Of a stretch of DNA of 64,000 bases, positions 19,901 to 22,900 are shown in pieces (the stretch's first letter is position 1; each line of letters opens with the position of its first letter). The translations under genes and the position numbers were made by a program. The notes below the pieces were generated by a model. The model made no database searches. It was not told where the DNA came from and saw only the letters and a list, made by a program, of their open reading frames with translations. The DNA comes from Macrostomum lignano. Its lineage: Eukaryota. The stretch covers positions 124,001-188,000 of the forward strand of contig NIVC01001887.1 of NCBI GenBank assembly GCA_002269645.1. Reading direction: 5' to 3'.

Positions 19901-22900
19901 ACACACAGACAGACAGACAGACAGACAGACAGACAGACAGACAGACAGACAGACAGACAGACAGACAGACAGACAGACAGACAGACAGACAGACTCAGTA
20001 TTTCTGGATTTCAGGACGAGAAATACCAGACCATAAAGTCGCTCATCTCGGTGCGTTTGGTGAGTCTCAATGAATCCCCAGTAAATCTGGGCCGAGCCAT
20101 TTGCATTGCGTGCAAATTCGCACCGCAATTTCCGCAACTGCAGCGATTTACCTTTGCAGCGCTGGACAGATCAGTACCTGCAGTGGGACCCCGAAGAGTT
20201 CGGCAACACCTCGAAAATTTGGATGTATGCCAACAGCATCTGGCTGCCGGACATCCTGATCAGCAACTAGTGAGTGCGAGCTGGTGTGACTGAGTCAACC
20301 ACAGAGTGACTGAGAGTCAGCCAGAGAGTGACTGAGCCAACCAGAGAGTGACTGAGCCAACCAGAGAGTGACTGAGCCAACCAGAGAGTGACTGGGTCAG
20401 CCAGAGAGTAACTGAGCCAACCAGAGAGTGACTGAGCCAACCAGAGAGTGACTGAGTCAGCCAGAGAGTGACTGAGCCAACCTGAGAGTGACTGAGCCAA
20501 CCAGAGAGTGACTGAGTCAGCCAGAGAGTGACTGAGCCAACCTGAGAGTGACTGAGAGTCAGTCAGAGATTGACTGAGCCAACCAGAGAGTGACTGAGTC
20601 AGCCAGAGAGTAACTGAGCCAACCAGAGAGTGACTGAGCCAACCAGAGAGTGACTGGGTCAGCCAGAGAGTAACTGAGCCAACCAGAGAGTGACTGAGCC
20701 AACCAGACAGTAACTGAGCCAACCAGAGAGTGACTGAGCCAACCAGAGAGTGACTGAGTCAGCCAGAGAGTGACTGAGCCAACCTGAGAGTGACTGAGCC
20801 AATCAGAGAGTGACAGAGTCAGCCAGTTCAGGAATTTCATAAGCCACAATGCATCGCCCTCCGCAGCGCTGACGATGACTACAAAGAGGTCATGAACACG
20901 AACGTGATTGTCAACCACGACGGCACTGTTCTGTGGATGTACCCGATGGTGACGAAAACCTACTGCGAGTTCGACGTGGAGCGGTTTCCCTTCGACAGGC
21001 AGGTTTGCAACGTGTCGTTTTTCTCCTGGACTTTCAGCAGCCGGTTGGTGAGTTTCTGGTTTTTTAAGCAGATCTGCTCTTTACTTGAAAGGATCCGCTT
21101 TGAGCACTGAACAACAGACCAATTAAAATACCCGAATATATTTAAACACACTTAAGTTATGATACCCGAACAGCTTAAACACCCGATCAGCTTCTAAACA
21201 CCCGATCAGCTTGCATGTAAACACCCGATCAGCTTAAACACCCAACCATACTAAGCATCCAGAGTTTGAGCACCAAGTCGCGCTCAGCGCCCCGCATTTT
21301 GAATTCCACACCTCAGCTGGACCTGCGCGTGGACGACACGCAGTCGAACAACAATTTCTACAACCCGCACGGCCAGGAGTGGCTGGTGGCCGGCATCACC
21401 AGCTCCCGCGAGCTGCAGATCTACGTCTGCTGCAAGGACGACCCGTTCCCCATCATCACCTACAACATCCACATGCAGCGGCGCAGCCTCTTCTACGTGC
21501 TGAACCTCATCTTCCCCTGCCTGCTCATCTACTGCTGCGCCTTTCTCGGCTTCTTCCTGCCCGTGGAGTGCGGCGAGAAGGTCAACCTGGAGATCACCAT
21601 CCTGCTGGCCCTGGTGGTGTTCCTCATCATCGCCGGCGAGGTGCTGCCACCAACCCCGGATGTCCTGCCGCTGCTGGGTGAGGCGCCTCTTGACTTCCTT
21701 AAGTCAGCTCTATGGAGCTCCGGGCGTCCGGATACAGGGGGGGGGGGGGCAATCGATGCCCATTCCGCTAACCCCTGGCGACCACCGGGCACTGGGCGCT
21801 GGCAGAAATTCTAGGGCCTGAAAACGTCGGGAAGGTCCGCGGGTGTGGGCCGAGCTTAGACCGGACTGTCCTGATCAAAGGCGGGACATTCACAGATGAG
21901 GCAGAATGGACATTTCTCAATCCGATCTGAGTCCTCTTTGAATTCCGTTGAGTCTTTTAATAATTAAACTGATTGGGATCGTGTGATATCTCATAGAGTC
22001 CCTTTAGAATCTCTTGGCGCTGCATGCGCGCCTCGTGGGGGTTCCCGAAGAATCTCATGGCACCCCATTCTGTTTCACTTGATCCTGGATCCTAAATCAA
22101 GAACCAATATCAATCAACAAGATCAAGATCAATAACCAATACGCTTGTGTACTAAAATTGGCGACTCACCCCGAAGAAACAGACTGTACATACCTGACGA
22201 TTGGAAATTCAGGGCCCGCTGTACACCCCGTGTGAGCGTACAATAGGAATAGGAAAATCGCATCAGTACTGCATGGTTGTGGGACAAGGTCGTAGAAGGC
22301 GTTACTCCAGGGTCCCATTTTGCAATTATGTTTTTATTGTTTAGCCTGCCGCCCATTGCAGGCTTGCTGTACGGCAGCTCCATGGCCATGGTCTCCATCG
22401 CCCTGGTCATGGCTGTCATCGTCACCAATTTGCATTACGCCGCCGACACCCGGCCGCCCCACCCCGTGCCGTGGCTGCTGCGGCGCCTCTCCCGCCTGGT
22501 CCTCGGTGGCGGCCTCGCTGAGCCCGGCCAGCTCCACGGCCGCAGCCGCCATCGATGCCGCAGGCGCCGGCGCCAGCTGCTCTGCCCGATCGCGGCGGCT
22601 GTCTGCCGATCATCGCGATCGCCAACCGCCGACACCGAGGATCGCTGCGGGCGCCGTCTCGCGAGGTCGGCGCTGGCGGGAGCGACGCCGCTGCCCCAGA
22701 CTGCTGGCAGCCGCGACAGCAGCCCCTGCGGCGGCTGCAGCGCCGGCGGCGGCGAGACCGTCGACGACTTAGAGGACGATGCCGAGACACCGCTGGGACC
22801 TAGACTGTCGGGAGAATTCGACAGCGCAGCCAAGTCAGCGGCAGGCCGGTCGGACAGCATCTGGGACCTCTGCTGCCAGCTGGTTTCCTCAGCCCAGATG

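Follow-up and report, generated by a model that had tools for sequence, protein, structure and literature searches.

A seven-exon Cys-loop receptor gene in Macrostomum lignano

We analysed a 64,000-nucleotide stretch of the genome of the flatworm Macrostomum lignano (GenBank assembly GCA_002269645.1, contig NIVC01001887.1, positions 124,001 to 188,000 of the forward strand; hereafter the window), which carries an intact, nicotinic-type Cys-loop receptor gene on its + strand. Seven exons with GT-AG splice sites (13938-23065) encode 586 amino acids, followed by a single stop codon. An original prediction, made by reading the letters alone, had recognised at 20015-21460 a nicotinic alpha subunit with a rebuilt agonist pocket, probably not gated by acetylcholine (ACh). 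This interval corresponds only to the middle part of the gene, which extends from 13938 (or at least from 17803) to 23065. Four exons (20015-20059, 20160-20269, 20867-21047 and 21317-21677), all with AG acceptors and GTGAG donors, join in one frame and encode the protein from the end of beta1 to the M2-M3 loop, comprising the ligand-binding domain plus M1-M2. The features of the locus are as follows.

13938..14040, + strand: exon 1 (candidate), start codon and signal peptide (34 residues); donor G/gtgagt, phase 1
17783..18039, + strand: exon 2, N-terminal extension and alpha1 helix/beta1, from MFRRRNRPK through a 21-residue stretch to FSLFHILDT; tblastn matches at 17905-18039
18063..18512, unstranded: (GACA)n microsatellite in intron 2
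19583-19994, unstranded: second (GACA)n array, immediately 5' of exon 3
20015..20059, + strand: exon 3, 15 residues including the first half of loop D; S55 (20048-50), R57 (20054-56)
20160..20269, + strand: exon 4, R59-WTDQYLQW to WLPDILISN(Y); R59 (20160-62), loop A with S93 (20262-64)
20286..20826, unstranded: 20-bp minisatellite filling intron 4, between the loop A exon and the loop E exon
20867..21047, + strand: exon 5, loop E, Cys-loop (C 20964-66 to C 21006-08), loop B FFSWTFSS with S145, F147, W149 (21027-29) and S153
21317..21677, + strand: exon 6, loop F (N164, 21347-49), loop C (14 residues; Y188, CC, F195, I197), M1, M2 and the M2-M3 loop PPTPD
21575-21640, + strand: M2 within exon 6, 25 letters followed by PPTPD
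22362..23065, + strand: exon 7, M3, a long Arg/Ala/Gly-rich intracellular loop, M4 (23 residues) and the stop codon TGA (23063-65)

The candidate exon 1 open reading frame (ORF; 13938-14040) holds a classical signal peptide (an 18-residue segment). Its phase-1 donor is compatible with an acceptor (cag/TG) at 17782/17783, and this splice stays in frame to give the 586-amino-acid ORF. An in-frame ATG in exon 2 (17803) corresponds to the start of the M. lignano protein model P0077, described below, which begins at the downstream MFRR and not at exon 1; a start there gives a protein that lacks a signal peptide. Searching the 64-kb window with seven relatives as tblastn queries returned one copy only of the receptor gene. 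Neither tblastn nor motif scans of every intron turned up a second, mutually exclusive version of the loop D or loop A exon. The introns are dense in (GACA)n arrays and 20-31-bp minisatellites. A 31-bp array (23081-23518) begins 16 bp past the receptor stop codon.

Both halves of the class architecture were detected in the spliced protein, namely Neur_chan_LBD (PF02931, 2.3e-48) and Neur_chan_memb (PF02932, 8e-24). Its best solved-structure match was human alpha7 (HMMER, E = 2e-71), the alignment running from the alpha1 helix as far as M3 and resuming at M4, where the M4 segment of exon 7 pairs with that of alpha7. The Cys-loop is a 15-residue stretch (codons 20964-21008) with 13 residues between the two Cys and an FPFD core. 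A vicinal Cys pair at the tip of loop C (IYVCC; C190-C191, 21428-21433) identifies an alpha-type subunit. The 25-letter M2 region is of the cation type, with Glu at -1' (GEK), an acidic residue at 20' (E20') and no Pro-Ala insertion before M2. Based on the GEK ring (E-1', K0') and E20', the channel is very probably cation-selective.

Altered pocket and pore residues

Residues are numbered according to human alpha7, through a MAFFT alignment that the HMMER alignment supports. Relative to alpha7, the window protein carries W55S, Q57R, Y93S, K145S, Y195F and D197I and keeps W149, Y188 and C190-C191. The aromatic box for ACh (Y93, W149, Y188, Y195, W55) is thus incomplete, the corresponding residues being S93, W149, Y188, F195 and S55. 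In the pore, GEK occupies -2' to 0' and is followed by N2' and E4'. The codons concerned are S55 (20048-50), R57 (20054-56), S93 (20262-64), S145 (21015-17), W149 (21027-29), Y188 (21422-24), C190-C191 (21428-33), F195 (21446-48), I197 (21452-54), N2' (21584-86) and E4' (21590-92). The original prediction had read all of these by eye. Each listed substitution was recovered by HMMER and MAFFT, its alignment was reproduced in the printed HMMER alignment, and the retained W149, Y188 and Cys pair (MAFFT), the GEK ring, N2' and E4' were likewise as described. The identification of a lophotrochozoan alpha-type subunit, here flatworm-like, with a cation-type pore is supported. Further changes absent from that prediction were R59, G147F, Y151F, G153S, D164N and a one-residue insertion in loop C (KDDPFPI vs KEPYPD). 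In 5-HT3A, 4' is occupied by a charged residue.

To place these residues in context, the 134 nearest representatives at 50% identity were used as a comparison set. W55 was kept in 114/134, Y93 in 107/134 (with Phe in a further 10), W149 in 132/134 and D164 in 100/134. Sequences with no aromatic residue at both 55 and 93 were confined to one family, hereafter the S55/R57 family, and two odd fused models, which argues that the combination is not a chance pattern. Arg57 had been proposed to act as a hook for a ligand carboxylate. This does not hold up, as Arg was the commonest residue at this position (55/134) and occurs beside W55 in loop D (YLWIRQ) of the ACh-gated vertebrate alpha9/alpha10 subunits. 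R57 is ancestral in the alpha9/10-like superclade and compatible with ACh gating, and so is not evidence of a newly installed hook. The S55/R57 family is instead distinguished by the loss of W55, Y93 and D164, together with frequent Arg at 59.

A discrete spiralian family

Full-length relatives with 50-56% identity, from several phyla, were retrieved from a collection of 5.8 billion proteins. These included the annelids Owenia, Helobdella, Capitella and Dimorphilus, the nemerteans Tubulanus and Lineus, the brachiopod Lingula and M. lignano itself. Most members carry the automatic label 'alpha-9/alpha-10-like', and a member from Intoshia is labelled 'cup-4-like'. They share L53, S/A55, R57, mostly R/H59, a non-aromatic residue at 93, N/Q164 in place of D164 and a hydrophobic residue in place of G147 (I147 in the residue table, which covered Owenia, Tubulanus, Lineus, Lingula, Helobdella, Dimorphilus and Macrostomum). 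W149, Y188 and the Cys pair are kept, and M2 is invariant over 18 residues, followed by PPTPD, with N2' and E4' in GEKVNLEIT. All of the residues that define the family are present in the window protein. The K145S change, which the original prediction had counted among the alterations of the pocket, is real, but this position is simply variable in the family (V/I/T/K/S).

The family is sharply bounded. Members scored 556-725 bits against the family profile, and the next single-receptor proteins, vertebrate alpha9/alpha10 and insect alpha5-like, scored about 365-383 bits. At 50% clustering the signature was carried only by P0004, P0009, P0077 and Intoshia P0156, and a full HMMER scan of 1.84 billion representatives found no additional family clusters. 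No mollusc, arthropod or deuterostome members were seen in the profile searches. Approximately 45 further fragments from other assemblies all keep YACCxEPYPD and GEKVNLE[IT]T. The family spans at least five phyla, with one to four members per species among the named matches. The Intoshia linei member (P0156, OAF68346.1) comes from an orthonectid with a drastically reduced nervous system and retains A55, R57 and S93.

Monophyly of the family, including the window gene, was recovered in 100% of neighbour-joining (NJ) bootstraps with both 31 and 46 taxa; a phylogeny had been put forward as a check in the original prediction, and the window gene falls inside this fully supported spiralian group. 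Grouping of the family with alpha9/10 received 26-39%, and grouping with two 'alpha-9/10-like' proteins of Pecten 23%. The family is a discrete, ancient and spiralian lineage within the alpha9/alpha10-like superclade of nicotinic-type receptors. Both the gene itself and its assignment to this family are virtually certain. The window gene adds a further, more derived sequence to a family of nicotinic-type orphans that is visible in databases but uncharacterised.

Among 29 outgroup receptors, 54 extracellular positions were conserved at 80% or more, and six of these were lost in the family (N47, W55, L92, Y93, S126 and D164). Three of the six (W55, Y93 and D164) are classical contact residues and four lie in binding loops. 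The two Pecten maximus proteins (P0283/P0188) combine the unusual M2 motif (VNLEIT/VSLEIT) with intact W55 and Y93, demonstrating that the pore and pocket signatures can be uncoupled. Two M. lignano paralogues, P0009 and P0011, have a loop B (SWTYDG) of the type found in the dopamine-gated channels discussed below, yet lack W55 and Y93, a mixture unseen in other phyla.

Pocket changes of two ages

The closest relative of the window protein is M. lignano P0077 (A0A1I8HXS1 / A0A1I8GXY9), an uncharacterised 'Neur_chan_LBD domain-containing protein'. The two grouped in 100% of NJ bootstraps and were 71% identical over 373 trimmed columns, so they are not the same gene but either paralogues or genes of different species. 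On this evidence the source is most likely a macrostomid-like flatworm, and would be M. lignano only if the window gene is a paralogue of P0077. They have in common the MFRR N-terminus, a 12-residue loop D stretch, loop B FFSWTF, the one-residue insertion in loop C (VCCKDD.FP) and an identical M2, and M1-M3 is almost unchanged. In P0077, loop C instead has F188 (FVCC), Q194 and N197, and the intracellular loop is unrelated. This variation in loop C (Y/F188, P/Q194, I/N197) indicates that the loop is still changing.

Comparison with the rest of the family separated the pocket changes into two ages. Those in loop D, loop A, D164, G147 and M2 are family-wide, whereas the changes in loops C, B and F are restricted to the Macrostomum proteins, the window gene included. 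V189, the loop C insertion, G153S, Y151F, I147F and three changes in loop F occur only in the window gene and P0077. Y195F is found in both together with D197I/N, and Y195F with D197V also occurs in M. lignano paralogues. Most family members keep YACCxEPYPD, Y151 and G153, all three of which the window gene and P0077 have altered. The rebuilt pocket of the original prediction was therefore correct in that two of the five aromatic-box residues (W55 and Y93) are gone, but the rebuilding is not peculiar to the window gene, since the features of loop D, loop A and M2 are invariant across at least five phyla.

Proposed function and alternative explanations

Our preferred reading, to which we assign a rough probability of 0.55, is that this intact gene is probably functional and encodes an alpha-type subunit of a cation-selective channel gated by an endogenous ligand other than ACh. 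In the proposed scheme, three pocket residues disappeared on the stem lineage of the family: W55 of loop D gave way to S/A, Y93 of loop A to S/T/N/Q/F and D164 of loop F to N/Q. Position 59 mostly became basic, while W149, Y188 and the Cys pair were retained, as were Y195 and D197 in the majority of members. The pore would have gained its invariant N2'/E4'/V12' M2. The replacement residues have since stayed near-constant across phyla, and this constancy suggests that the altered site is used rather than decayed, with the complementary face participating; the subunit would thus form homomers, or heteromers with its own paralogues. Such a channel would respond poorly or not at all to ACh and would open to a different small molecule of endogenous origin, which would use the W149/Y188 cation-pi core and face a more open, more positive complementary wall (Arg57, Arg59). 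This shift in charge may slightly favour a zwitterionic or acid-bearing amine over a pure cation, and such an amine is our weakly held best guess for the ligand; an amino-acid-like ligand, as originally suggested, is unlikely. An endogenous transmitter accords better than an environmental cue with a family that is old, tightly conserved and low in copy number. A second wave of changes in loops B, F and C (F147, S153, N166, F167, V189, the additional residue, F195, I/N197) may have moved the site further from the nicotinic consensus in the window gene and P0077.

The strongest competitor, though still the less probable account, is that the protein remains an ACh or choline receptor subunit, acting either as the principal-face alpha of heteromers with a normal complementary partner or as a homomer of low potency. 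W149, Y188, C190-C191 and an aromatic residue at 195 are all kept, and R57 also occurs in alpha9/alpha10, the nearest vertebrate relatives, which are gated by ACh. Mammalian muscle alpha1 (P0284) offers a direct parallel for the heteromeric form, having R55/K57 in place of the loop D Trp while binding ACh on its principal face only. Alpha1 nevertheless keeps Y93 on that face, which is lost in every member of the family. A complementary face that played no part would also hardly be expected to keep S/A55-x-R57 invariant over at least five phyla, and loop F has lost its Asp as well; the window gene additionally lacks G153, Y151, Y195 and D197. We had considered a Trichuris cluster as an example of a receptor that had lost Y93 yet was ACh-gated. 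This control was dropped, because the apparent Thr93 came from a truncated gene model, and the cloned protein reads LYN. On balance, the window channel is probably not gated by ACh as a homomer. The original prediction of no ACh gating is supported for ordinary homomers, which the losses of W55 and Y93 make improbable, and not for heteromers, to which the loss of W55 alone is no bar, as in muscle alpha1.

A monoamine-gated cation channel is a considerably weaker candidate. DopC1 of Octopus, Aplysia, Daphnia and Apis forms homomeric cation channels (Courtney et al. bioRxiv 10.1101/2025.04.02.646353), and honeybee alpha5 (Mitchell et al. PMC12700902) and Daphnia DopC1 (McRunnel et al. bioRxiv 10.1101/2025.10.31.685654) are homomeric and dopamine-gated. 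Dopamine and other amines open these channels, and ACh has little or no effect (10.1101/2025.04.02.646353; PMC12700902; 10.1101/2025.10.31.685654). They belong to the same alpha9/10-like superclade as the window gene, of whose invertebrate relatives with characterised function DopC1 and honeybee alpha5 are the nearest, and the DopC-type loop B of the Macrostomum paralogues P0009/P0011 adds to the resemblance. According to the same three papers, the DopC signatures are YSCC in loop C, SWTY-D-G with a critical Asp in loop B, Leu/Phe in loop E where alpha9/10 have Asp, and retention of the loop D Trp. The window protein has SWTFSS without that Asp, YVCC rather than YSCC, and no W55, the residue that contacts the dopamine ring in simulations of honeybee alpha5; two Arg on the complementary wall would also disfavour a purely cationic ligand. 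Within the compared set, the DopC signatures matched insect, amphipod (Trinorchestia) and Bulinus sequences, which formed their own NJ clade, and the family grouped with these DopC-like sequences in 5% of bootstraps. Membership in DopC1, attractive at first given the 'alpha-9/10-like' labels and the ACh-insensitive homomers, was rejected on both the signature residues and the tree.

Two further explanations are very improbable. The original prediction had drawn an analogy with the chemotactile receptors of cephalopods, and a nicotinic-type lophotrochozoan protein with a non-canonical pocket and a fast-evolving loop C (Y/F188, P/Q194 and I/N197 between the window gene and P0077) does invite it. 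The analogy fits poorly with a single copy in 64 kb, the small number of members per species, an old family with nearly invariant M2 and loop D, the kept CC and W149, the near-invariant M2 and loop C of the ~45 fragments and retention even in the extremely reduced Intoshia. Low copy number together with conserved M2 and loop C again favours a conserved endogenous ligand over an environmental one. Equally remote is the absence of any ligand gating, in which case the subunit would be silent or structural, the channel would sense pH or ions, or the gene copy would be decaying. The orphan Alpo4 is unresponsive to more than 30 ligands, and Y188 is Phe in P0077. Yet the ORF is intact over seven exons with canonical splice sites, M1-M3 is almost unchanged between proteins only 71% identical, and neither the Cys-loop, the FPFD motif nor the motifs of the gating interface have been lost.

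Several observations weigh against gating by an endogenous ligand other than ACh. The principal face, with W149, Y188, CC and an aromatic residue at 195, could support low-potency binding of ACh or choline, and muscle alpha1 binds ACh in heteromers despite lacking W55. Variability at position 93 within the family is expected for relaxed, not redirected, selection there. Neither enrichment of lost conserved positions in the binding loops (4/6 vs 17/48, p = 0.15) nor the stricter test of diagnostic residues (5/11 vs 74/202, p = 0.37) was significant, so the argument rests on the identity of the changed residues and not on an excess of changes. The gene model comes from genomic sequence, no RNA evidence for the window gene was found and the signal-peptide exon is a prediction. 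The trees are NJ only and recover candidate sister groups at 23-39% bootstrap, and literature searches found no paper on the S55/R57 family. DopC1 itself shows that a ligand is not reliably readable from canonical residues, a caution that cuts both ways.

A broader extension of the non-ACh reading, which we hold only tentatively, is that the whole S55/R57/N164 family represents a spiralian-wide ionotropic receptor for a transmitter new to nicotinic-type cation channels. One candidate would be a zwitterionic or acidic amine bridging the W149/Y188 core and the Arg57/Arg59 wall. On this view the family, which ranges from annelids to orthonectids and yielded no mollusc member, would have been further re-tuned in macrostomid flatworms.

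Lophotrochozoans commonly have divergent nicotinic-like subunits (Jiao et al., PMC6896357), so the window gene is not a surprise in itself. The nicotinic-type receptors of these animals are numerous and mostly orphan, and some have changed their ligand, as in DopC1, honeybee alpha5 and the octopus chemotactile receptors. What the analysis adds is a defined target in place of an odd gene: a family that is small, ancient and clearly delimited, whose alternative signature in pocket and pore is fixed and whose members occur in experimentally tractable animals (Macrostomum, Owenia, Lingula and nemerteans). The window gene is a good candidate for de-orphanisation. De-orphanised members would show whether spiralians use an extra fast excitatory transmitter, and how far a pocket can lose its aromatics and still gate. 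Should the channels prove to be ordinary low-affinity ACh receptors, the finding would be routine.

Other features of the window

Upstream of the receptor, the - strand carries a Ty3/gypsy-type long terminal repeat (LTR) retroelement (5980-10073) whose long open pol ORF covers protease, reverse transcriptase, RNase H and integrase domains and whose gag ORF includes a zinc knuckle. On either side (5119-5612 and 10316-10822) stand ~500-bp arrays of one trinucleotide, which reads (TAG)n or, rotated, (AGT)n, and the element looks like an insertion into a single long microsatellite. A 312-amino-acid ORF (10825-11763, - strand) with a signal-peptide-like N-terminus and no Pfam match adjoins the retroelement.

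Approximately 6 kb downstream of the receptor, on the opposite strand, lies a beta-tubulin gene (29295-31038, - strand) with at least two exons (Pfam Tubulin, Tubulin_C). An MTA-like chromatin gene follows at 43640-47926 (+ strand), including a BAH plus ELM2 exon (43640-44341) and a 612-amino-acid ORF (46088-47926, + strand) that has a GATA-type zinc-finger-like CxxC…CxxC stretch and no Pfam match; a 1.5-kb array of a 21-bp minisatellite (44043-45611) lies between the two. A histone deacetylase gene occupies 53104-54756 (+ strand; Pfam Hist_deacetyl 4e-54, exon 54172-54756), and an Ala-rich ORF upstream of the Hist_deacetyl exon may be its N-terminal region.

The minisatellite load of the window is extreme, with units of 16-47 bp and 33 Tandem Repeats Finder (TRF) rows scoring at least 200 (e.g. 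14-1404, 41988-43518 and 59365-64000). One 16/22-bp array takes up the last 4.6 kb, and many of the long 'ORFs' in the window are nothing but such repeats. AT-rich blocks at 32000-40000 and 48000-52000 (GC 32-39%) are set within sequence of 52-66% GC and may be old transposon-derived or of different origin.

Comparison with known systems

The cephalopod chemotactile receptors and the betaine receptor ACR-23 of C. elegans are nicotinic-type cation channels repurposed for ligands other than ACh. The chemotactile receptors are a young, tandemly expanded, cephalopod-specific radiation, a description from which the S55/R57 family is set apart by its copy number, age and conservation. P0077, the nearest protein of all, resembles the window protein in loop D, loop B and M2 and departs from it in loop C and the intracellular loop, as detailed above.

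The vertebrate alpha9/alpha10 subunits, ACh-gated receptors of the hair cell, were the best matches to the family profile outside the family. They resemble the window family in R57, SWTY, the GEKV start of M2 and the Cys pair. They differ in keeping Y53, W55, Y93, G147, D119 and D164 and in having VSLGVT in M2, and identity is only about 32%. Of their own signatures (loop D YLWIRQ, M2 VSLGVT) the family shares only R57, and it is monophyletic apart from them (100%).

Alpo4 of Alvinella pompejana, determined by cryo-electron microscopy, is a lophotrochozoan nicotinic-type orphan that stays closed to ACh and serotonin (PMC10338036). Its pattern is the reverse of that in the window gene, with the aromatics kept, the loop D Trp among them, and no vicinal Cys pair. 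The 60 best solved-structure matches of the window protein did not include it.

DopC1 and the non-dipteran insect alpha5 receptors are alike in belonging to the alpha9/10-like superclade and in combining the Cys pair, a cation-type pore and nicotinic architecture without ACh gating. They keep W55, Y93, D164, WASWTYDG and YSCC, whereas the window protein has S55, SWTFSS and YVCC, and the two fall in separate clades. Gating of DopC1 and honeybee alpha5 by dopamine and not ACh nevertheless provides a precedent for ligand switching within this superclade.

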